From: Mytilus californianus | Lineage: Eukaryota | Length of the DNA stretch: 64,000 nt | Direction: 5' to 3' | NCBI RefSeq assembly: GCF_021869535.1 | Contig: NW_026262679.1 | Span: 111,352,001-111,416,000, forward strand | In this document: positions 15,600-62,370 of the stretch, in pieces | How positions within the stretch are numbered: position 1 is the first letter of the stretch | Layout: each line of letters starts with the position of its first letter | Notes under the pieces: model-generated | Told to the model about the DNA's origin: nothing | What the model saw: only the letters and a program-made list of their open reading frames with translations | Databases searched by the model: none | Made by a program: the position numbers and the translations under genes

Positions 15600-16102
15600 T
15601 CATATAGCCGGTTTTAAGCGTCAGTTGTCCTAAGTTTGTATATTTTGTCAGGGTTATACACGGAATTTTCATAAGAATAAAATTAATGATGGCTAGACTT
15701 AAATAGAGTTGTGTATAGTCAAAATTTGAATAATGCCTAGTCTAAAATCTAATTATGTCTAGCCTTAATTTATTGTGTCTAGTCTAATTGAATTATGTCT
15801 AGTCTAGTCTAAATGACATATGTCAAGTCCTAATTGAATATGACTAGACAGAAATAGATATGACTAGACTAAACTAGAATTAAGGCTAGACTAAATCATT
15901 CATGACAAGACATTATCAATTTTGACTAGTCATAATTATATTTAAGGCTTGTCATAATTAATTTAGACTAGACATAGTTCTATTAAGGCTGGTTATAATC
16001 AATTAAAACTAGACATAATTCTATTTAACAGTTTAAGACTAGTAATAATTAATCTAGACTAGATATTTATAATGATTTATGACTCACAAACCGCGCCATA
16101 TA
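15600..16102. mobile_element. Foldback-like element of ~21-bp units whose orientation flips mid-element
   Basis: aattatgtctagtct-type units up to about 15830, then agactagacataatt-type units; degenerate terminal inverted motifs. Confidence 0.55.
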
Positions 16103-22592: not shown

Positions 22593-23220
22593 AATAGATA
22601 ATAATTGGGTGCTGATATATAGCGAATACAGAATAAGAGTCAAAATAAATAAGGAATTAGAAAAAAATGGTCTAAAATATAAAATAAATACACTGGCACC
22701 CGTTGTGGAACAATTGTGTATACAAGTAAAAAATGAATAGTTCCATACTTAAAAGGGGAAAGGGGAATGGGAGATTTAGTTATCAAAATGTTCTTCTGTA
22801 TGAAAATTACACTTCACATTTTTTTTTGCGTCCGAAGCGTTTATTCTGGATTTACCTTCACCAGGAACGCTCAAAGCCGAATATTTGAAAGCCAAAGAAT
22901 AAATTTAAAAAATAAATAATAATGGGGTGATGATATATAGCGAATACAGAATAAGAGTCAAAATAAATAAGAAATAGAAAAAAAATGGTCTAAAATATAA
23001 AATAAATACACTGGCACCCGTTTTGGAACAATTGTGTATACAAATCAAAAATGATTGGTTCCAGACTTAAACGGGGAAAGGGAAGTATTGGTTATCAAAA
23101 TGTTCTTCTGTTCAAGTATTTAAAATGAAAATTACACTTCACAAATTTGTTTGCGTCCGAAGCGGTATATCTAGATTTACCTTCACCAGGAACGCTCAAA
23201 GCCGAATATTTGAAAGCCAA
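22593..23220. repeat. Direct tandem duplication of about 310 bp
   Basis: 22593-22895 repeats as about 22911-23220; both copies end in gatttaccttcaccaggaacgctcaaagccgaatatttgaaagccaa. Confidence 0.9.
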
Positions 23221-24143
23221 TCATGAATAAGCACAGTAAGAGTTTCGTTTATCTGATTTCATGATGCAATAGTTGCTAAAATTATCATCAAGTATCAACA
23301 ATAACCAACATTTTAAATCGAGGCAACGTCAATAAACTTGTAACCTTTAACGATATTTATTTCAATTCGGAAATTTTAAATAGAACTACGTAAATCATAG
23401 TACATTGAAAGTTTATTCGAAAGTTTCCGTCTTCCTCCTTTAAATATCCAATAAAAAGAAAAAAAAGATTTAATTAGGGATATACATCCTAGTTATTTAC
23501 CTGTCGTAGTTGTGTTAGGATGACATTGTAAGTAGCATATATTATCTGTTGTGTTAGGATGACATTGTAAGTAACATATATTATCTGAAGTATTGAATAT
23601 ATTTTCTTTATACATTCTAATTAAAATTCAGATCTATTGTAACTTGCGTCGAAGTCTTGTGAGGATAGCGAAATCAGAAATCTATATTTTAAGTAGATTG
23701 ATCTTTTCAATGTTTCGTCAATTCAAAATGAAAATACCGGTAAATTATTGCCAAGTTGATTGTAATTTTTAACAAATTGGAATGAAACATCTCACTGAAA
23801 AAAATTCTAAAAAGAAATAAAAGTAAACACCAACATACAATAATGTTATCATAACTGAAGAAGGATAGATGGGGACTATTATCGGAAACAAAACGAATAT
23901 AGCATTAGTTTATTTCTACATCTATAGTTTTGTAGAAACATGGCGGATTGAAGGATTAAGGATGGTCGCGACTCTGTTTCAAAAATAACAAGCTTTTTAA
24001 AAGAGTGTTATAAATTGATAGTAAATAAATAACGGAACTAAAAAGGCAGAAAAAAAAGAAGGGTCTGTGTCCTTGTTTTCGAGATCTTTCTAACCATTTT
24101 TTTCTGTTGAAGGTGTGGAAGTAGGACTACTGACTACGCCGTC

Positions 24144-26474
24144 ACGATACTTCTAGTTACTTTTATTATTTCTTGTAATGCTTCAAATGATCTTGAAAAG
24201 CCAAAAAAGTGTCATTTTGAGGTTGAGAACAAATCCGGCAATTACTTAGCTAAATGGCTTAAAATTATAGACGGAATGGTTGCTCCTTTGGACATTGCGT
24301 TTACAAATAACAAGACATATAGTTCAACACCAGACGTTTTGCTTCCGAACAGATGGATATGGACATTTGTTCCTCCTTTCGGTGGAAAATTCTACATTTC
24401 ATGGCCCTTGGATTACTTTGTGTATTCGTTCGGTCTACTCGATACGCATACTTTATATCCTACAAAAATCTACTTAAACGTTACTCCTCCGGACTGCAAT
24501 ATTACATTCGGCGATCCTAAAACTACTGAAGGAATTGGTAACGCTTTGCAAAAAATGGCCAAGGAGCAACACTTTTATAAAATCAACGAGATGTATGACT
24601 ATAGCTACTGGTGTTATTTGTCGAGGAGTTCTTATTTTAATAACTCATTGTACTATGGTTTAAGTCGATACCTAAACGTACCATTACAACTATTGGGATA
24701 TAAATGCTGTCGGAACAGTGGTGGAAAGAAACGGTTAATTTGTGACCACAAAAATGTCATACAGAATTCCTATCAACTAATACCCTTTTACATAGGACTT
24801 GTTTTCCTAGTATATTTTCCACTTGCTCTTCTAAAATTTGGACATGAAGCTTTGGAATCCAGTAATGACATAAAACATATCGCGTTACAATCGGAATATT
24901 CAATTATACCAAATCAGGATGACGACTATATTTTTATGAGAACAAGAGGTCATATATCAGTCTTTAAAATGATTGTCAGCGCTTTTGGATTGGCTGACAA
25001 ACATCCGGTAATTGTGTCGAGAATACGACGAGTTATATTTGTAACATTGGCTCCATTTCTTGTATACATATTTATTTTACTTTACTACAAGAAAGGACGT
25101 TATTTGATGAAAGAAATAGTCAATCATAGAATTCCACATGGGTTTGTATCTGTTGTCGGTGGTTTTACTGAGAGTCTAGACCTGTACCTACCAATGTTTG
25201 GTGGTCCGGCAATTTCGCTCATTTTATACCTCATAGTAGGATTAATATTGACGTTAGTTCCAAGAAGTTTGTCTGATATCCTTCAGTTGGGGTTATCTCC
25301 TGACGAATCAACCTATTCAACACTTTTAACATTAGACTTGGTAACAATTGAAAAGTTTTCGAAGAAGAAATGCAGTCAAATATCTGGCTACCGGAGATTC
25401 TATTCTGTAATGAGAGGATCGTTATACATGTTAATAAATCCGTCATTTTGGTGTTATGTCCTATCGTTCCAAAAGACAAGATTGAGAAAAGTAATAGATA
25501 AATTGTGTCCTGGGTGTGTTGGGACGATCTGTATGGCCATTATTTGTCTGCCTGTATTTGTATCTTACTTCTGTTTCTGTATTTTAGAGACGGTATTAAT
25601 GATATTTTATTACGGCTTTCCCTTTTGTTATTTTGTGGTGTCAACTGCCAAAGGATACGCAAAGTATTTCCAAAGAGCACAACAAAAACAGACATTTATG
25701 CTAAATGTTGTATTATCAATACTTTTCCCTATTTGCTTTCTCTTTTTCATGTTTATGTTGGTCATGATAAGTCTGGAAACTTTCATGATCATTGGTTATT
25801 TCATATTTTTCGTTTACTTATCCCTTGTGATATTTCCAGGATGGTCTTTTGGTTTCGTATACTATGTAATTATGTTCATTCTATATGTACATAGTGTATT
25901 GAAAGATTTTAAACAGGAATACCAAGACTTATTGCATCATACCATACAAGCATCCGTTAAAGTGGAAAAGGCTGCCTTAGCAACGGAACTACTAAATAAA
26001 AGACAAAACTGTACAGGCTGCTCTATGCCCGAATTTATAGCAATTACTAACAGAATTCCCTTAGAAATATTTAATCAAACTACATCGATACAGCATGATA
26101 ATCGAATCGAATATGTACGATTTCGAAAACAGATACCAGGAGTTCGAAGAGATCTGTATCGGTTCGTTATCGATAGATCCTATCCCGTACATATCGCATT
26201 CTTCCATATCATCGTGCAAATTTTAGTGCTACAAGTTATCGTTTTGATCTCTATATTATTTATTACCACGTACATACAGAGGGAATCGTCACGGGACTCC
26301 AGTGACGTCCTGAATGTAATGTGTATTATAATTGTAACAATGATTCCAAATCTTGTACGTATTTTCTTCTGTAAAGTACATAACAATAAGGTAAGAAAAA
26401 GGAAAATCCGACAAAGAGTTATAGAATTTTGGAGAGCAAAGAACAATGTTTACATCGACGATGATAACGAGTAA
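24144..26474 (+). CDS. Uncharacterised multi-pass membrane protein, paralogue A (776 aa if started at ACG 24144; track ORF starts at ATG 24276)
   Basis: The frame is open from 24111 to the stop at 26474. The in-frame extension (T)ILLVTFIISCNASNDLEKPKKCHFEVENKSGNYLAKWLKIIDGM aligns with the signal peptide and N-terminus of paralogue B. Cys-containing ectodomain of about 200 aa, then roughly 9-10 hydrophobic segments by eye; no introns in the CDS. Confidence 0.9.
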   Translation, partial: TILLVTFIISCNASNDLEKPKKCHFEVENKSGNYLAKWLKIIDGMVAPLDIAFTNNKTYSSTPDVLLPNRWIWTFVPPFGGKFYISWPLDYFVYSFGLLDTHTLYPTKIYLNVTPPDCNITFGDPKTTEGIGNALQKMAKEQHFYKINEMYDYSYWCYLSRSSYFNNSLYYGLSRYLNVPLQLLGYKCCRNSGGKKRLICDHKNVIQNSYQLIPFYIGLVFLVYFPLALLKFGHEALESSNDIKHIALQSEYSIIPNQDDDYIFMRTRGHISVFKMIVSAFGLADKHPVIVSRIRRVIFVTLAPFLVYIFILLYYKKGRYLMKEIVNHRIPHGFVSVVGGFTESLDLYLPMFGGPAISLILYLIVGLILTLVPRSLSDILQLGLSPDESTYSTLLTLDLVTIEKFSKKKCSQISGYRRFYSVMRGSLYMLINPSFWCYVLSFQKTRLRKVIDKLCPGCVGTICMAIICLPVFVSYFCFCILETVLMIFYYGFPFCYFVVSTAKGYAKYFQRAQQKQTFMLNVVLSILFPICFLFFMFMLVMISLETFMIIGYFIFFVYLSLVIFPGWSFGFVYYVIMFILYVHSVLKDFKQEYQDLLHHTIQASVKVEKAALATELLNKRQNCTGCSMPEFIAITNRIPLEIFNQTTSIQHDNRIEYVRFRKQIPGVRRDLYRFVIDRSYPVHIAFFHIIVQILVLQVIVLISILFITTYIQRESSRDSSDVLNVMCIIIVTMIPNLVRIFFCKVHNNKVRKRKIRQRVIEFWRAKNNVYIDDDNE

Positions 26475-26693
26475 GGAAAAGGACACAATGGCTCCATTTC
26501 ATCTGTTCTGATGTCAATTACAAAAAGGGTTAATTGGGATCTCCAATTGATCTAAAAGGTGATTACAAGAAACTCGTAATAAGTTCATGGACATTAAGTT
26601 AAAAGTTTAAGGAATCCTGAAGTTTTAGCAGCAATAGATTTTTAGTTTCTACAACTTAAAACCTTGTCCGTATTTTGAATTCAGAACTTTGAA

Positions 26694-26816
26694 GTACTGA
26701 ACAATTAGGTTGGTGACAGTACTGAACAATAAGCCTGGTGACAGTACTGAAAAATTAGGCTGGTGACAGTACTGAAAAATTAGGCTGGTGACAGTACTGA
26801 CAAATTAGGCTGGTGA
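26694..26816. repeat. 25-bp tandem repeat, 5 units
   Basis: Unit gtactgaa(c/a)aattaggctggtgaca. Confidence 0.92.
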
Positions 26817-28330
26817 GTCTCCCAGTAAAGATATCTAACCAATGATAACATTTAACGGTACAACATTTACAGCAGCAGAAGCACATGAAATATTGTATAG
26901 ATACCTGTTTATTGTTGACTATTTGTATCCATTTAGATGTCTTTTGTTTATTTTTGTCATTGGTTTGTGCAATACATTGTAAGCTAAACATTTGTTTCCG
27001 AATCGAATTAATGATTCAACTACAATTATATAATCATGCCAATGTGTAAAACTTGAATGAATCAATAAATAAAATCTTAACACTTACTCCACAATACCAG
27101 TATCCTAGATAACAGATTCAATAAATAAAATCTTATCACTTACTCCATAATACCAGTATCCTAGATAACAGAATCAATTAATAAAATATTAACACTAACT
27201 CCACAATACCAGTATCCTAGATAACAGAATCAATAAATAAAATCTTAACACTAACTCCACAATACCAGTATCCTAGATAACAGAATCAATAAATAAAATC
27301 TTAACACTAACTCCACAATACCAGTATGATCCTAGATAACAGAATCAATAAATAAAATCTTAACACTACCTCCACAATACCAGTATCCTAGATAACAGAA
27401 TCAATAAATAAAATCTTAACACTAACTCCACAATACCAGTATCCTAGATAACAACAACAACAAATCTCAGAATGCTCGTAACCTCAATGTTGCTGATATG
27501 AACAACTCTAATTTTGATGACTGTACTTCACGCAGAGATTTTATAAAGCAGAAGTATAAGAAGACACTTGTACAATTCCATGAACAAATATGTACAGCAG
27601 AAAATCAATGCAGAATAAAACAAATAGATCGTTGTAGTCTTGTTATTGAACTTGTTAGCTTGAGAAATATTATCATCGTTCTTGTACATGTATATATTTT
27701 CCAGCAGGTGGAATCATACGTCACAATAAAACTCAACTCTTGTGCTATAATTTAGATACACTTTTTTTTAGCAATCTATGAAATCTATATCCCCGTTTTA
27801 AAAGTTATTTAGTACGTTAACAGAAAGTTTGCCTGGTCTGCATGTATTACACGTACATGGAAAAAAACAAATTGAACATTTAAGTCTTATTTCGGATAAT
27901 AAATGAACAGCACTAGTCTATTCAGTTAGCCAAAGACTGAGAGTAAAGCGGCCCGCTAATCTTGTTAGCTTAATGAATTGCGCCCCTTTTTTTGATCTGA
28001 TTCCCAAAAGTGATATCGTACTTCAACATTAAATTTCAATATTTGCTATTAACATAAGAAACAGTTTTGATCAATTTGTGAAATCTATATCCCACTTGTA
28101 AAAGTTCATAAACATATCAACAGAAAGTCTTCCTGGTTCGTATTGATACTGCTTTATGGTACAAGTTACACATCATGCACAACAGACATAATTTAACACC
28201 TTAGTAAGTGTTTGAATACTATTTTTATCAATACTAACATTGACTTTGTTTTTGATAAATTAAAACACAAGTAGATATGTAGTGTTGTACTGATATGAAA
28301 GGTTATGGTCCTACATCCTGTCAATATTAT
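26803..28330 (+). repeat. 1.5-kb duplicated block, copy 1
   Basis: Collinear with 62606-63991 from aattaggctggtga to ggtcctacatcctgtcaatatt. Confidence 0.92.
27060..27455. repeat. 56-bp tandem repeat, 7 units
   Basis: Unit aatcaataaataaaatcttaacactaactccacaataccagtatcctagataacag. Confidence 0.93.
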
Positions 28331-28529
28331 GAATTGTTTTTTTTTCATTGCACAAGGTCATCCTTTCTCAAGCTGTTCATAACATTCTTACACTAAATCC
28401 CGTGGATGTGTACTGATTGATATTTTCTTTTGGGAGATCTTGATTTATTTATTAGTTGTAATTAGCTTTAAAATGGCTTTCAGTAATTGCGAGTACTCTT
28501 AGATCGGTATGTTGTTTTATTTTTGTCTT

Positions 28530-28810
28530 CATACTGATCTGACGAGTTGAGATATTTTCAAAGGTTAGGAGTCTGTTATTCGGTGGTTGTGGTTTGTAGC
28601 TGTTTAACGTATTTGTTTTTCGTTTATTGTTTTGTCATAAATCAGGCCTTTGTTTTTCTTTTTTCGCATCTTGTCATGTCGGAGCTTACTATAATTATGG
28701 GTTTTGCTCATTGTTGGAGGCCGTGCAGTGATCTATAGTTACTTAAATCCATGTTATTTGGATTCTGGTGGACATTTGCCTTAGAGGCAATCATACCACA
28801 CCTTATTTTA
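28530..28810 (-). repeat. High-copy interspersed repeat (same family)
   Basis: ttttgctcattgttggaggccgtgcagtgatctatag...ggcaatcataccacacc. Confidence 0.7.
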
Positions 28811-30660
28811 AAATAAATTACAGATTGTATCTATGTTATACACATCATATATATATATAACATAAGTAAGCAAATAGATCTGTCTATAGATATTGACGTT
28901 TGAAACGATTCGAGTTTCACTGTCATAAAAATCGACATCCATTCAGAACGATGGACCTGAATACATAATTAAGGTCTGCTGAATACATTAAACTGTAAAC
29001 TGAACCAATTTTTGTTCACATCAAAGCTAGTTTGGAATATTTTATTGTGATCTAATTGTTAGAGAAGTGCATTTTTAGTTGAAGCACACTAAAGTTTTGT
29101 GGTAATATAATACAAAAAATTGTCAAGACTCATATAACTTACCAAAAGATGCTCAAACAAGTAATACACGACATAGTGACCTAAATATTGCTGAACATTA
29201 TTATGCTACACAAGAAAACTACAACCCTGTAAAAGTCATTTATCACTAATACTAGCATTAAATTTAATGTTGTTTTTTTTCCATTCAGACTAGCATTGAC
29301 AATAACCCACTAGCGGTTCTCCTCAAATGATATGAAACATTCATATCTATCGTAACTCGCTCACTCGTCTCGAATATTTATACTTTAATTATAGATTCAA
29401 TATTACACTAACGGTGTTTGAGCAAATGACAAATGAGCTTTTGCTCCGTGTTGAAGGCCAGGATGTGACTTTATGACGAAGATCAGCACTATCAGTGCTG
29501 TATTTTTACTGTGGGTTTTGTCAGATGCGTGAACGAATATATCTTTGTTTTCCTTCGTTTCCGTTATGTTATATGCGAACGAGACAGGAACAACCTACTT
29601 AAAGCAAATTTGAATTCAAGTATGTTTTTTTCGTGTAGACATCGTCTTTTCTGCATCGTAGATAATAGTAAAATGCAACGGCAGATTATAACATAACACA
29701 TAATTAAATACAAAACAGATTTGGGCTGGTTATAGATACAACTACCAATATATAGCCAACGAAATTTTTAGGAAACAATACTTTATACTATCTGACACTT
29801 TTATTTTACAACAGAATGTACAAAACTATACATTTTCAAATCATATGCTTTATAAAAAGCAAAAAGAAACATAACACTTTACTTAAGGTCAAGAAACAGT
29901 AAATGAGCTATGTTACAGATTTTGATAAAATTTTGCATGCAACTTTGGCTCGTTGTATTTTAGCTAAAAATCGAAAAAATAATGAATTTATCTTATTTAT
30001 TTTCTGAAATATTACTGATTAAATTCTTTCAAAATAGGTGAACATTTGCATAGAAAGCACATACAATCGGCGAAATACGTTCTTAAATTTGTCTTATAAT
30101 TACCAAATCTCCAATTTCAATTCCATAGATTTTTCCTAAAAAAAACATATGGTATTGATACATACATTTTCGTAAAAGATACAATAGAACAAAAAACACT
30201 ACAATTTGATAAATTGATATTGAAATTGTTTCGCAAGTAGAGGTTGGAACTTAGGAGTTTTCATGTTTTTCATGCAATGGATTTTGGTAGAATTTATACC
30301 CGTTGATGTAATCCATTATCAATTGTGATGATGACGTTTTGTCAGTTTTGATACAAGTTTGAACATAAGTTTTCACACATGTACTACCATCAACAAACGA
30401 AAATCGCATTTTGTTACTTACTTTCTAACAAAACTAAAGTTCGAGCGTATCCGAAAATTTTCATAAAAAAAATCTTTCCATCTTGTATCATTCGGAGAAC
30501 TTCCTTGTCACTAGTCAGTGCCTATAGATCTTATTGTCTACACACTAAAATTTGACTTTATATTCTAAGAGATTATTTGATAAATTCGGTTCTCGCACAG
30601 TCTCTCTATTTGGAAAAGTTTGAAAGTTTTTAATTGAATTATACTTAGGAATCAGCATGT

Positions 30661-32991
30661 TTAATTCTCCATTGCAAATTTCTTTTTCTTTTCCCAGAAG
30701 TCTATTATACTTTGTCTGACTTTCCTTTTCCGAACATTTTTATTGTGCACTCGCACGAAAAGCAGACGAATAAGATTTGGGAACATGGTAACGACGACAA
30801 CTGACATAACGTTCAAGACTTCATTGGACTCGTCCGATGTAAAGTTTTTAATGTATCTTGAAATGAAGATAATTGATACTAATACAAGTACCTGCACACA
30901 CAGAATCTGAATTATTATATGAAAAAATGCTATGTGAACGGGTAGAAATTTGTCAATAATGTATTCAAACAGATCTTTTCTGACTCCTGGCACCTGTCCT
31001 TTGTACAGAACATAATCGTTTTGAAATCCGTACTGAATGGACAACGATTCATAAGACATTCCTAAAGGAATTGTGTTTGTCAAGGCCAAACATTCGGTTG
31101 CACAGCATCCACTGTTGTTTTTAGCTTTATGGTCGAGTAGTTCTTTCGCAATTTTAACTTTAACGAGTTTTTCCGAAGCTTTGATTGTAAACTCTAGTAA
31201 TGCTTGATACTCGTTTTCAAATTCTTTCACCACAGTATGTACAAATAAAATGAACATAATGATAAAATAGATAAATCCAAATGAACGACTGGGAAAAACG
31301 ATCAATGACAAGTAAAGAAAAAATATAAAGTAGCCAATGATAGTGAAGGATTGCAGAATTATGATAATGAACATAAAGAAATAGAAAAGGCAACAAAGTG
31401 GAAATAATATAAACGCACATACACTGGATACTACTAGCATCCGTCTGTTTGATTGCTTGAAATGACGGACATATCCTCGCACGACTGACAAAATGAAGAG
31501 AAAAATTGGAAACCCATAGAAAATATACAATAACAGAGTTTCAACTATACACCAAAAGATGTAAATAATAAACAATGGCATACGAACAAAAAACGTAAAG
31601 CATCTTTTCATGTGACAACAACTGCATAAAGCCATCATAATGGATTTCCATCTACGTAAATGAAATAAAGTTATGAACTTCAAAAAGACTGGATTTATAA
31701 GCATGTAAATAGATCCTCGCATCACTGAATATACTTTTCTATATCTACTGAAGTTTCGACAGTGCTTTTTTGAGAATTTTTCTATAGTGGCTACATCTAG
31801 CATAAGAAGAGTTGAAAATGGCTTTGTGTCCGGTGGTAGACCTTGTTCCAAAATTTTAGAAAGATCTACGGGAACCAATATTACAATCAGTCCAACAATG
31901 TTGTATAGAATAAGGGATATTACTGGGCCTCCAAACATTGGAAGAAATAAATCCCTGCTTTCTGTGAATCCACCGAGAAGTGACATGAAACCGCATGGTA
32001 TTTTATGCTTGACTATCTCCTTGATGAGGTCTTGTCCAAGTCCATGATATACAAGGAGAAATACATACACAATGATCGGAGTTAGCAATACAAACATTGT
32101 TCTTCTTATTCTTGAGACAAGGAGCGGATGTCTATCACCAAGACCAAATAATCCAAACAATAATTTGGAAATGGATATCGGTCCCCTTTGTTTTAGAAAC
32201 AGAAAATCTGTATCTTTAGTTTCTAGACTTAACAGTTGGGTACCTGAATTATCTAACTCTTCTCCAGAATCGATAGCATGTTTTCCTATCTTTACAACAA
32301 CAAGAGGGAAATACGCCATGGCAATTATTCCAATGTAGTATGGCAGGAGTTGATAAATATTCCAGATATTTTCGTTTCTTATGTCACAAATCGCTTCCCT
32401 TTTCTCCATGAAATTACGACAACATTTATAACCAAACAACTGAAGCGGAACACCTAGGTATTGGTTAAGCATATACCACGTGGAGTCTCTAAACTTTGAG
32501 TTTGTTGTTATATAACACCAATAACTGTACTCATAAAGTGCATTGAGTTTGAAAAGGTAATATTCTGACATGTTATACAGAGCATTGCTTAGTTCATGAA
32601 TAGTGTGATTACCACCGAAAAGAATGCTGCAGTTTTCGGGGTCTGTTTGAACATAGAGTGTAACTGGATATTTTAGACTGTGCGTGTCGAGTAGACCAAA
32701 CGAATAAACAAAATAGTCTACAGGCCATGAAATGTAAAATTTTCCTCCTCCAGGAGGTACAAATGTCCACATCCATCTGTCTGGAAACAGGACCTCGTCA
32801 GTCGCGTTAAACGTTTTGTCGTAAAATTTGAATTTTATATGTGCCAGCATTCCCTGTAGTATTTTTACCCATTTCGTAAAATATTCAGCCGACTCGTCCT
32901 CTATTTGAAATTTACATCCATTCCATTCCTCTATGTAAGACTGTGTTGCGAAAACCGAAGACAAAAACAGCAAGACAATGAATGGCGTCAT
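30661..32991 (-). CDS. Uncharacterised multi-pass membrane protein, paralogue B (776 aa)
   Basis: 2331-nt ORF with signal peptide MTPFIVLLFLSSVFA. Blocks shared with paralogue A: WTFVPPxGGKFYISWPxDYFVYSFGLLDTH, GGFTESxDLxLPMFGGP, YSVMRGSxYMLINP, PGVRxDL, PVHIAFFHIIxQIL. Splice acceptor 18 nt upstream of the ATG. Confidence 0.92.
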   Translation of the reverse strand: MTPFIVLLFLSSVFATQSYIEEWNGCKFQIEDESAEYFTKWVKILQGMLAHIKFKFYDKTFNATDEVLFPDRWMWTFVPPGGGKFYISWPVDYFVYSFGLLDTHSLKYPVTLYVQTDPENCSILFGGNHTIHELSNALYNMSEYYLFKLNALYEYSYWCYITTNSKFRDSTWYMLNQYLGVPLQLFGYKCCRNFMEKREAICDIRNENIWNIYQLLPYYIGIIAMAYFPLVVVKIGKHAIDSGEELDNSGTQLLSLETKDTDFLFLKQRGPISISKLLFGLFGLGDRHPLLVSRIRRTMFVLLTPIIVYVFLLVYHGLGQDLIKEIVKHKIPCGFMSLLGGFTESRDLFLPMFGGPVISLILYNIVGLIVILVPVDLSKILEQGLPPDTKPFSTLLMLDVATIEKFSKKHCRNFSRYRKVYSVMRGSIYMLINPVFLKFITLFHLRRWKSIMMALCSCCHMKRCFTFFVRMPLFIIYIFWCIVETLLLYIFYGFPIFLFILSVVRGYVRHFKQSNRRMLVVSSVCAFILFPLCCLFYFFMFIIIILQSFTIIGYFIFFLYLSLIVFPSRSFGFIYFIIMFILFVHTVVKEFENEYQALLEFTIKASEKLVKVKIAKELLDHKAKNNSGCCATECLALTNTIPLGMSYESLSIQYGFQNDYVLYKGQVPGVRKDLFEYIIDKFLPVHIAFFHIIIQILCVQVLVLVSIIFISRYIKNFTSDESNEVLNVMSVVVVTMFPNLIRLLFVRVHNKNVRKRKVRQSIIDFWEKKKKFAMEN

Positions 32992-33116
32992 CTATATACT
33001 TTGATTGCTCTGATAGAAAGAAAAATGTTCTATTACCCAATCTATTAATGTTTAAAGAATACAAAATCGGTTTTTGATAAAACTAACTAATATTATTATA
33101 TATAGTTACATATATA

Positions 33117-59196: not shown

Positions 59197-62100
59197 ATGA
59201 GTATTGATAATAATATTACAGTCTTATCTATGAATGTAAGGGTCATATTTTCGAGCAAGAAAAAAAGATTAGATATTTTTGATTGGGTAAGAGGTAAAAA
59301 TGCATCTATTGTTTGTTTTCAAGAGATCCACAGTAATGAGGATATCGAGAAACTTTGGCAAGACGAATGGGGTAATACATGCATTTTCAGTCACTGCAAC
59401 AATAAAAGTGCTGGTGTTAGTGTGATGTTTAACAAGGGTCTGGATTTTAAGATTCATGATTCTAAAATAGACCAGAAAGGTCGTTTTATTGTTCTAGACT
59501 TATCATTATATGAACAAAGGCTTACCTTTTTCACCGTTTATGGATTTAATACAGATGAACCATCATTGTTTAGTGATATTTTACACAACATCACTTGCTA
59601 CACTAATACTAGCATCTTAATGTGTGGTGACTGGAATGTTGTACAAGATTTTCAGACGGACACTTATAATATTCTGCACAATAGAAATTTAAACTCTCGT
59701 AATAAGATTAAAGAAATTTTACAAACTTTTGAACTTTTGGATCCATGGAGAACCTGTCATCCTGATGACAGAAACTTAACATGGCATCAAACCTCTCCTA
59801 TCAAGCAGAGTCGACTAGATTACTTTTTATTAAGTGAAGACTTATTTTCACTTATGAAAAATACAAAAAATATACCTGGATACAAAAACGATCACTCGGC
59901 CATTGTTTTCACATTTTCTGCCAGTCTTGATAAAAGGGGTAAGGGATATTGGAAGTTTAATTCACAGTTGTTGAGAGATACTGCGTATGTTGAAAAGGTA
60001 AAGATGTGTATTAAGGACACTGTTTCTGAGTTTTATTTTTCAGACAATTTAGATGACCCATTGCATGTACAATTTACTTGTAATGATTTTTTTTTCTGGA
60101 AGTACTGAAGATAAAAATCAGATCCTTGTCCATTACACACAGTATATCTAAATCAAAAGAAGAGAAAAATACTACTCTGAAACTTGAAGAGGATATACAA
60201 AATTTAGATATTATTATGAATACATCCCCTACTGAAGCTGTACAGACCACTTTATATGACAAAAAAGTGGAGTTAGAATCCATGAGAGAGCAGAAGATAG
60301 AGGGTATACTTTTACGGTCCAGGGCAAACTGGCATGAAAATGGTGAAAAATGTTCTCAATATTTTTGTAAATTAGAAAAGAGAAATTTTATAAAGAAGAC
60401 AATGGTTGAAATGATTGGTGATCAGGGTAATCAAATTTCAGACCAATCCAAGATTCTATCAGAACAACATAATTTTTATAAAAATTTGTTTTCAGACAGA
60501 AAAATTGATTGTTCAAATGAAAGCTTTTTCTCACAATGTTGCCCTTACACAGGAACAACATAACCTGTGTGAGGTTAACTTAACATATTAGGAATGTTCT
60601 ATGGCATTGAATAAGATGAAAAATGGAAAATCCCCAGGAAGCGATGGATTTACTGTCTTGTATACCAAAAGAAGGAAAAGATATGCGATATATTAGTAAT
60701 TGGCAACCTATCAGCCTTTTAAATACAGAAATTAAAATAGCTTCTGAAGCAATAGCAAACAGAGTCAAGTCTGTATTACCATATATTATTAGTGACATTC
60801 AAAAGGGATTTATAAAGGGGAGGTTAATTGGGAGAATACTGGATTATTGTACGATTTGATGCACTATCTTGAATACCATAACATGAGTGCCTTACTTTTA
60901 TTGGTTGATTTTGAAAAGGCATTTGACTCTGTTGACTGGGTCTATTACAAAAAGCATTAAAAAGTTTTAATTTTGGTCCTTCGATGTGCAGATGGTACAA
61001 GACTCTACAAAAGTGCTAAAAGTTGTGTAATCAACAATGGCCATTTATCATTTTTTATCAATCTTGAGAGAGGTTGCCGACAAGAGGATACGCTCTCCCC
61101 TTATTTGTTTGTTATTGGTGTAGAGTTATTATCTTTTAAACTTAAGTCCAACCCAAATATTCAAAGTGTCCTCATCAATGAAAAACAAACACTATTAAGT
61201 CAGTATGCAGAATATACCTTTCTTACTTTAGATGGTAGTGAGACATCACTACAAGAAAGCCTCGATAGTTTTGATTCTTTTTACATGTTATCTGGATTAA
61301 AAATGAACAGATCAAAGACAAGAGCTGTTTGGATTGGTAACAAAAAATATTCTGATCACATATTGTGTCCTAATTACAATCTTATGTGGTCACATACAAA
61401 CTTTAGTATTTTAGGAATACATTTTTCTCTTGATTTAAAATGCATTCTCGATATTAATTTTAGAAAGAAGATCAAAGAGGTTTCAGCTATACTAAAAAGC
61501 TGGCAACATAGAAAATTAACATTACTAGGTAAAATCACTGTAATTCAGACTCTGGCATTGCCAAGATTGATTCATTTGTTGACTGCTCTGCCGAATTTAC
61601 CTCACTCACAATTAAATGAACTAAATACTATGTTTTTTAATTTCATATGGAATGGTAAGACTGATAGAGTCAAGCTTAGTACTCTTATTGCAGATTTTTC
61701 ACAGGGAGGATTAAATATGGTGCATTTGCAGTCTTTCTGTACATATCTTAAATTATCTTGGGTAAAGAGATTTTTATCAAATTCAGACTGTACTTGGCAG
61801 AATGTATTACTTGCAGAACTAAAACAGTTAGGTGGTGACAGAGTCTTTACATTACAAAAGGATAAGATTAAAGAAATTTCTAATTGCTTAAAAAATCCAT
61901 TTTGGAAAGACATATTTTGTTGTCTACACATGGCAAAGCCTTATACAAAGTTATGTGTTCCAAAAATTTTATCATTGGATATTTTAAACTTTATACCAGT
62001 ATCTGAATACCCTGTTTATATGAAATGGAAGTTATATGGTATACAATTTATAAAGGACATTGTAGATAGTCAAAGCAAATCATTGTTAACATTTCAACAA

Positions 62101-62370
62101 GTAAGACGAAAACTTAATATTGAAAATTTTTTGATATACTACAGTTTATTATCTAACATTCCAAAATACATCAAAAGAAACATCAAAGATTATTGTGATT
62201 TGAACTTAGAAAATTTTGTTCCTTTTGATGCATTTTCTAAAAAGATCAAGGAAAATAAGAAGTTGAAATTTGTATACATAGATCTTGTAGATAAAATATG
62301 CATACTCCCAAATGAGAAATTTTTTAAATGGGAGGAAGTAACAAATTCTGAAATCTTAGAATGGTCTTAG
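59197..62370 (+). mobile_element. L1/Tx1-clade LINE ORF2 (AP endonuclease + reverse transcriptase), fragmented
   Basis: Endonuclease motifs SMNVR, CFQEIH, MCGDWN, SRLDYFL, DHSAI in 59197-60108. RT motifs KSPGSDGF, NWQPISLLN, DFEKAFDSV, RGCRQEDTLSPYLF, and YAEY in place of YADD (61204-61215). Split over at least four ORFs; no ORF1 upstream. Confidence 0.93.

Follow-up and report, generated by a model that had tools for sequence, protein, structure and literature searches.

A stretch of 64,000 nucleotides from the mussel Mytilus californianus (RefSeq assembly GCF_021869535.1, contig NW_026262679.1, positions 111,352,001 to 111,416,000; hereafter the window, with positions counted from its first letter) contains two convergent genes, here termed copy A and copy B, that very likely correspond to anciently duplicated and selectively maintained paralogues belonging to a large, unnamed family of spiralian multi-pass membrane glycoproteins. 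The arrangement and conservation of the pair, the extent of the family, the predicted anatomy of its proteins and the search for known relatives are presented below, together with the functions that may be considered. Feature coordinates are listed in Table 1.

A conserved and selectively maintained gene pair

Between 23 and 34 kb of the window, only two open reading frames (ORFs) of more than 150 amino acids (aa) are found, namely 24276-26474 on the plus strand (copy A) and 30661-32991 on the minus strand (copy B). These are the two family copies in the window. With the stops at 26474 and 30661, respectively, the two lie tail-to-tail across a spacer of 4186 bp, as had been described in an earlier, sequence-only reading of the region, which placed two long collinear ORFs some 4.2 kb apart. 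At the protein level, BLASTP aligned the two copies collinearly over 776 residues with 50% identity, 72% similarity and nine gap positions. The motifs cited in that reading (CxF, SYWCY, GYKCCRN, xICD and PGVRxDL...PVHIAFFHII, as well as the basic tail) were located in both copies, as were the hydrophobic segments and N-x-S/T sequons.

The same convergent pair, adjoining a CLAMP-domain gene, is found in Mytilus trossulus (locus L001). DNA identity between the window and this locus reaches 91.8% for copy A and 90.6% for copy B, with weaker alignment through the flanks. When non-synonymous (dN) and synonymous (dS) divergence from the M. trossulus orthologues was calculated by the Nei-Gojobori method, values of 0.045 and 0.226 were obtained for copy A (omega 0.20), and of 0.032 and 0.256 for copy B (omega 0.126, or ~0.13). 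The purifying selection on both copies that had been proposed earlier is hence borne out. The membrane core is the most constrained part of each protein (omega 0.15 for copy A and 0.12 for copy B), whereas the ectodomain of copy A evolves faster than does its core (omega 0.28 vs 0.15). Between the two copies, dS is saturated and dN stands at 0.39. The pair, previously taken as duplicated, can as such be described as old, selected duplicates within a Mytilus-specific clade.

Extent, phylogeny and exon structure of the family

Apart from Mytilus proteins, a word search returned only three further sequences, one with 27% identity and two, from Octopus sinensis, with 21-22%. A profile comprising nine sequences, i.e., both window copies (copy A being represented in the searches by the protein of its main exon) and seven of the word-search hits, was then compared with 1.84 billion representative sequences, identifying 268 clusters at E<=1e-3, of which 203 reach <=1e-10 and 155 reach <=1e-30. 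Cluster look-ups provided about 30 named members, all annotated as "uncharacterized" or "hypothetical." These come from bivalves (five Mytilus species, Mercenaria, Sinanodonta, Argopecten and Dreissena), a gastropod (Haliotis asinina), a cephalopod (Octopus sinensis), an annelid (Owenia fusiformis), a nemertean (Tubulanus polymorphus) and a brachiopod (Lingula anatina). No non-spiralian name appeared among these ~30 named members, most hits being unnamed and the 118 weakest lying outside those listed. Word searches meant to widen the taxonomy, relying on a profile of the 85-member alignment (A4) or on the Owenia protein P0102, contributed few extra members.

In the 85-member alignment, copies A and B align end to end with 83 relatives and display the hallmarks of the family, namely the six ectodomain cysteines, WxWT, SxGLL, RxxR before the second transmembrane helix (TM2), GGP before TM3, a glutamate in TM4, the YGxP turn and prolines 567, 684 and 738. 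In a FastTree phylogeny of the same 85 members, A, B and a third paralogue (P0003/P0004) form a Mytilus-only clade with support of 100, the sister of which is another Mytilus pair, while bivalve sequences occur in at least two deep clades. Paralogues are numerous, with at least five clusters in Mytilus and several in each of Sinanodonta, Mercenaria and Owenia. One member stands apart in its annotation: P0180 of Mytilus edulis (608 aa) is listed as methyltransferase-domain-containing (PF13649, PF08241) and yet aligns with one half of the family profile (E 9e-106). This entry is probably a chimeric gene model in which two neighboring genes were fused.

The coding sequence (CDS) is contained in a single exon in all seven members looked up besides Mytilus, representing four phyla (Octopus: 731 aa, 2196 bp; Tubulanus: 808 aa, 2427 bp; Lingula: 780 aa, 2343 bp; Owenia: 830 aa, 2493 bp; Haliotis: 830 aa, 2493 bp; Sinanodonta: 789 aa, 2370 bp; and Argopecten: 783 aa, 2352 bp). 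A M. californianus paralogue, P0010 (761 aa encoded within 3094 bp), contains an intron, like copy A. As judged from these gene structures, the absence of coding introns is ancestral to the family. Given that a single coding exon is seen across four phyla, the contrast with the intron-rich genes nearby is no sign of recent retroposition or of foreign origin.

Copy A is transcribed and spliced

The sequence-only reading had described an intronless pair of 776-aa genes. This holds for copy B, a single coding exon of that length. Copy A, however, includes a mini-exon and an intron, and its presumed start at 24144 falls on an ACG codon rather than ATG. The frame of copy A is open only from 24111, following a TGA at 24108-24110, and contains no ATG before 24276; homology to copy B nonetheless extends further upstream, to ~24150. 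The upstream start was first deduced from the M. trossulus orthologue P0005 (LOC134716783), as this model begins with MKACGSR, of which only residues 4-785 map to the long exon; in locus L001, the first 8 nt, ATGAAAGC, are followed by GTAAGT and lie ~0.9 kb upstream of that exon. The corresponding joint in M. californianus was seen afterwards. Specifically, a 3317-nt contig of run X5 joins 23527 to 24113 and continues through the whole CDS. The matched side of the joint measures only 20 nt, such that use of the duplicate donor at 23559-23566 is possible. From the exon coordinates, the copy A protein is calculated to comprise 789 aa.

Contigs of X5 and of the RNA-Seq library X16 tile the CDS of copy A. 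Moreover, the interval 24279-26248 is covered by raw stranded RNA reads from run X21 whose first mates map exclusively to the minus strand, which in most stranded libraries is the pattern of a plus-strand transcript. On the basis of the 23527 to 24113 joint and these stranded reads, copy A is transcribed and spliced.

The tandem duplication at 23509-23587 includes the start codon of copy A along with its 8-nt mini-exon and splice donor. At the level of sequence, copy A thereby has two equivalent first exons 39 bp apart, as compared to the one of its M. trossulus orthologue. Downstream of the CDS, the X5 contig extends to 28460 with three non-canonical skips. These were considered as introns and rejected, as none is of the GT..AG type and two coincide with tandem arrays. 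In transcript-like contigs from another mussel sample, 332 and 339 nt are absent exactly at the two arrays (26693-26816 and 27059-27453), showing that the arrays vary in length. At least two of the skips are therefore length differences, as is, probably, the third. The region extending from the stop codon to 28460 is a probable 3' untranslated region (UTR) of copy A, with the contig being no proof of a single transcript.

For copy B, an in-frame TAG directly precedes the start codon and a predicted 3' splice acceptor is found 18 nt upstream of the ATG; the M. trossulus model of the orthologue reaches ~1 kb further upstream. Copy B thus probably has an intron in its 5' UTR. The M. trossulus partner gene (L001 16925-20238, minus strand) is annotated as encoding 815 aa, and in that gene no stop codon stands directly ahead of the conserved ATG. 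Since a TAG occupies this position in the window, the 815-aa extension is probably an over-long annotation.

Table 1. Positions in the window of copy A, copy B and associated features, with the basis for each assignment.
Feature	Position	Strand	Basis or remark
Copy A, coding mini-exon 1 (ATGACATT, then donor GTAAGT)	23520..23527	+	Pattern match; M. trossulus exon 1; contig joint
Identical second copy of ATGACATT mini-exon	23559-23566	+	Inside 39-bp x2 tandem duplication 23509-23587 (Tandem Repeats Finder)
Copy A, intron, 585 nt, GT..AG	23528..24112	+	Contig joint, depth 24; acceptor ...ttctgttgaag conserved in M. trossulus
Copy A, main coding exon including stop (whole CDS minus first 8 nt)	24113..26474	+	ORF; orthologue; RNA reads
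Copy A, probable long 3' UTR with length-variable minisatellites	26475..28460	+	Run X5 contig
Minisatellite, 25 bp x5	26693-26816		In probable 3' UTR of copy A
Minisatellite, 56 bp x7	27059-27453		In probable 3' UTR of copy A
Copy B, single coding exon, 776 aa plus stop	30661..32991	-	ATG at 32991, in-frame TAG directly before
Copy B, predicted 3' splice acceptor of 5' UTR intron (tttttctttctatcag, then A)	33009..33011	-	Sequence, upstream of ATG
Copy B, predicted ectodomain, residues 23-211	32359..32925	-	Mixed alpha/beta (folded ~27-202), pLDDT ~90
Copy B, predicted membrane core, residues 212-590, seven helices	31222..32358	-	AlphaFold2 model; alignment
Copy B, predicted cytoplasmic module, residues 591-684	30940..31221	-	TM7 continued as long helix, variable loop, beta-hairpin 661-671
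Copy B, predicted last two TM helices 685-716 and 720-745 (P738) and basic amphipathic C-terminal helix 751-775	30664..30939	-	

Predicted protein anatomy

AlphaFold2, provided with the 85-row alignment, yielded a model of copy B with a mean predicted local distance difference test (pLDDT) score of 89.1 and a predicted template-modeling (pTM) score of 0.86; for residues 205-600 alone, these values were 89.8 and 0.84. In almost all members, a hydrophobic segment lies within the first 30 residues, and its position at the extreme N-terminus points to a signal peptide, which is predicted to be cleavable. The ectodomain predicted to follow, of ~190 aa and presumably disulfide-bonded and glycosylated, contains conserved cysteines 26, 121, 159, 190, 191 and 202, the WxWT and SxGLL motifs and four sequons. 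In the core, P229, R294/R297, GGP (354-356), P374, NPxF(W) (433-437), R447, E484 in TM4 and the YGxP turn (492-495) are found, with helices modeled at 212-247, 289-318, 356-372, 463-493 and 495-517. These are joined by an unbroken, fully hydrophobic helix of 46 residues (520-565) and by a helix spanning 567-624, the second half of which is charged and leads into a poorly conserved loop. The predicted cytoplasmic module carries the conserved G(V/I)RxxLF...P(V)H motif.

Basic residues cluster at 235-296, 376-462, 509-519 and in the tail, regions that would lie on the cytoplasmic side. Because of this distribution and the signal peptide, the model fits about nine TM spans, with an external N-terminus and an internal C-terminus. 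No internal or inverted repeat among the membrane segments was detected with hhalign.

Residues conserved in >=90% of the members are C26, W73, W75, S97, L101, C121, C159, C190, P229, R294, R297, G354-G355-P356, P374, F436, W437, R447, E484, P495, P567, Y583, Y595, P684 and P738, while C191 and C202 reach 84-88%. The first outer loop (319-355; G.P.GF...GGP) is the most conserved non-membrane element, and the near-invariant E484 is located eleven residues before the outer TM4/TM5 turn.

Search for known relatives

The sequence-only reading had left the family unassigned and recognized no GPCR, Cys-loop, TRP, TMC, ABC or SLC signature. Both statements withstood Pfam, PDB sequence and structure searches, all of which were without a match. 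In Pfam, nothing was retrieved with the two window proteins (E<=1), with 14 other full-length members (E<=0.1 to 10) or with 84 core segments (E<=10), and PDB sequences were matched neither by a single protein nor by the 85-sequence profile. In the Foldseek comparison with the PDB, E values were no better than 0.19 (full model) and 0.34 (core), and TM-scores did not exceed 0.2. The best E value against viral models (BFVD), i.e., 0.59, was no match, and VIA-align wide searches of the PDB with the full model and the core, as well as a second VIA look, returned only generic helical matches at noise level. In these searches, neither a 7tm Pfam signature nor a seven-helix fold pointing to GPCR/7TM membership was found, nor was a Pfam domain or fold match of the ABC, TMC/OSCA/TMEM16, otopetrin, Cys-loop or TRP families. 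A literature search revealed no paper on the Mytilus genes or on the family.

The sole member flagged among those looked up was P0028 of Haliotis asinina (L007 8001-10493), for which a precomputed weak match to PF28478 (DUF8415), a model outside the Pfam copy searched here, is given. No mention of PF28478/DUF8415 was found in the literature.

Several known systems nonetheless resemble the mussel proteins in layout. STRA6, the retinol receptor, has nine TM helices, an external N-terminus and long cytoplasmic helices after the core, as predicted for the mussel proteins, but lacks a large ectodomain and was not matched in fold or sequence searches. The GOLD-domain seven-TM proteins (TMEM87, GPR107/108 and Wntless) combine a signal peptide, a luminal or outer domain of ~200 aa and a helical core. 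By contrast, the mussel family is predicted to have nine helices rather than seven or eight and an ectodomain that is mixed alpha/beta and not a beta-sandwich; no GOLD-domain chain appeared in any fold search. Finally, clustered invertebrate receptor and channel families with single-exon genes share with the present family the single coding exon, local duplicates and many paralogues per genome, yet no homology was found, with no otopetrin, GPCR or 7TM ion-channel chain being significant.

What the proteins may do

Assignment of A and B to an old, conserved family of membrane glycoproteins has to be weighed against five points. First, the RNA evidence covers copy A; P0001, 93% identical to copy B, was considered as its transcript and rejected, as the P0001 contig is collinear genomic DNA. 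Second, three near-invariant residues are replaced in copy B (G416R, W437L and Y583F). Third, the count of nine TM helices would hold only if helix 520-565 crosses the membrane once. Fourth, given the weak flag on P0028, the family, or part of it, may already carry a DUF (domain of unknown function) number. Lastly, the structure searches addressed solved PDB structures and viral models, and a relative among unsolved proteins is possible.

As to function, the sequence-only reading had suggested a receptor or channel pair, possibly hetero-oligomeric or sensory, which is still conjectural. Here, a sensor, channel or transporter facing the cell surface or a lumen is favored, tentatively, over an intracellular cargo or lipid-handling protein. 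The first outer loop, the ectodomain and the position of Glu484 suggest a binding or permeation site open to the outside, and the helix-hairpin motif conserved on the cytoplasmic side suggests a link to the cell interior. In the mechanism proposed, a binding site would be built from the ectodomain together with the strongly conserved first outer loop and would lie above a polar center in the membrane, organized around the near-invariant Glu484 of TM4; transmission or gating would fall to the cytoplasmic helix-hairpin module. A bolder version, which should be regarded as speculative, is that the family represents a new structural class confined to Spiralia, i.e., a channel or transporter that senses ligands or ions, has a fold of its own and lacks a counterpart in vertebrates, insects and nematodes, with A and B possibly co-assembling as subunits. 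Such a fold would comprise the ectodomain docked on a nine-helix core, the 46-residue hydrophobic helix and the membrane glutamate.

Overlapping with the favored class is the idea of chemosensory or environmental receptors expanded by lineage, in analogy to clustered chemoreceptor genes with a single exon, and with A and B differing in specificity. The single coding exon, the many paralogues per genome with their lineage-specific clades and the faster evolution of the copy A ectodomain relative to its core (omega 0.28 vs 0.15) speak for such receptors. The orthologues are, however, fairly strongly constrained (omega 0.13-0.20), and neither a 7TM fold nor a match to any known receptor class was obtained, rendering this version rather unlikely.

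An intracellular protein of the endoplasmic reticulum, Golgi or lysosome, such as a cargo receptor, a lipid scramblase or a membrane enzyme, with the ectodomain facing the lumen, is given similarly little credence. Topology prediction cannot tell surface from lumen, a signal peptide, luminal domain and polytopic core are also combined in GOLD-domain 7TM proteins and Wntless, and a membrane-embedded glutamate with interfacial arginines is compatible with lipid handling. At the same time, no TMEM87, Wntless, scramblase, MBOAT or GT-C enzyme structure was matched in PDB searches, and the invariant His/Asp/Ser set typical of membrane enzymes is absent.

Still less probable is a very divergent choline transporter-like carrier (SLC44/CTL/Pns1), which would be a special case of a transporter. 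In SLC44/CTL proteins, a hydrophobic segment at the N-terminus is followed by a glycosylated, Cys-rich ectodomain of ~200 aa and by nine further TM helices, such that the mussel proteins recall CTL1 and yeast Pns1 in their predicted layout of a hydrophobic N-terminus, Cys-rich outer domain of this size, nine helices and cytoplasmic C-terminus. Indeed, yeast PNS1 (9f63) heads the Foldseek rows obtained with the core and ranks fourth with the full model; the core rows further include human CTL1 entries 9qu3 and 7wwb, with alignments spanning the whole core. Yet these rows are non-significant (E 0.34-3.4, probability <=0.20, TM-score ~0.16, rmsd ~24 A) and no CTL chain is found in the VIA top 50 of either search (rank-50 Z of 4.7 and 4.3). 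Nor was Choline_transpo (PF04515) matched by the window proteins (E<=1), the 14 members (E<=0.1 to 10) or the 84 core segments (E<=10), or a CTL chain in PDB sequences by the 85-sequence profile at E<=10. The mussel family, moreover, is predicted to have a true N-terminal signal peptide and not an internal first TM helix, and we know of no CTL counterpart to the cytoplasmic helix-hairpin module. The likeness to SLC44/CTL is hence a resemblance only, lacking sequence, Pfam, profile or VIA support.

Last, a retrogene, transposon ORF, virus-derived ORF or decaying pseudogene pair, as might be imagined from long uninterrupted ORFs in an intron-rich genome and from a long interspersed nuclear element (LINE) at 59-62 kb of the window, is highly improbable and a mobile or viral origin is effectively excluded: the pair contains no transposase, reverse transcriptase, integrase or capsid domain in Pfam and finds no match in BFVD, it is syntenic and under purifying selection in the comparison with M. 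trossulus, its single-exon state is common to four phyla, copy A is spliced and transcribed, and only two copies occur in the window.

Other features of the window

In three short segments (23097-23293, 23885-24081 and 28613-28800), depth rises to hundreds or thousands in each of the four runs, and many reads run on beyond them into sequence that is unrelated. Such segments are highly repeated elements, and one of them lies within the copy A intron. At 59197-62370, on the plus strand, three consecutive ORFs that include an AP-endonuclease domain (Exo_endo_phos, E 2.4e-9) and a reverse-transcriptase fragment (RVT_1, E 5e-6) correspond to a LINE-type retrotransposon, apparently in pieces. Lastly, dozens of staggered blastn matches in both orientations between 15680-16067 of the window and 4379-5976 of L001 reflect a satellite-like tandem array.

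Significance

Conserved polytopic families with no detectable relative, with confident models and with a spread across an entire superclade are uncommon. The present family counts hundreds of members in commercially and ecologically important molluscs and in model spiralians (Owenia, Lingula and Octopus), and is nameless. Should AFDB or HHpred tie it to a known family, it would become an ordinary divergent branch of the latter. Genes with a single exon can be cloned with little effort, which should make structural work, knock-down and expression in oocytes or cell lines straightforward. If these proteins truly are channels, receptors or transporters, then they would offer a new class for animal membrane biology and for spiralian sensory and ion physiology.

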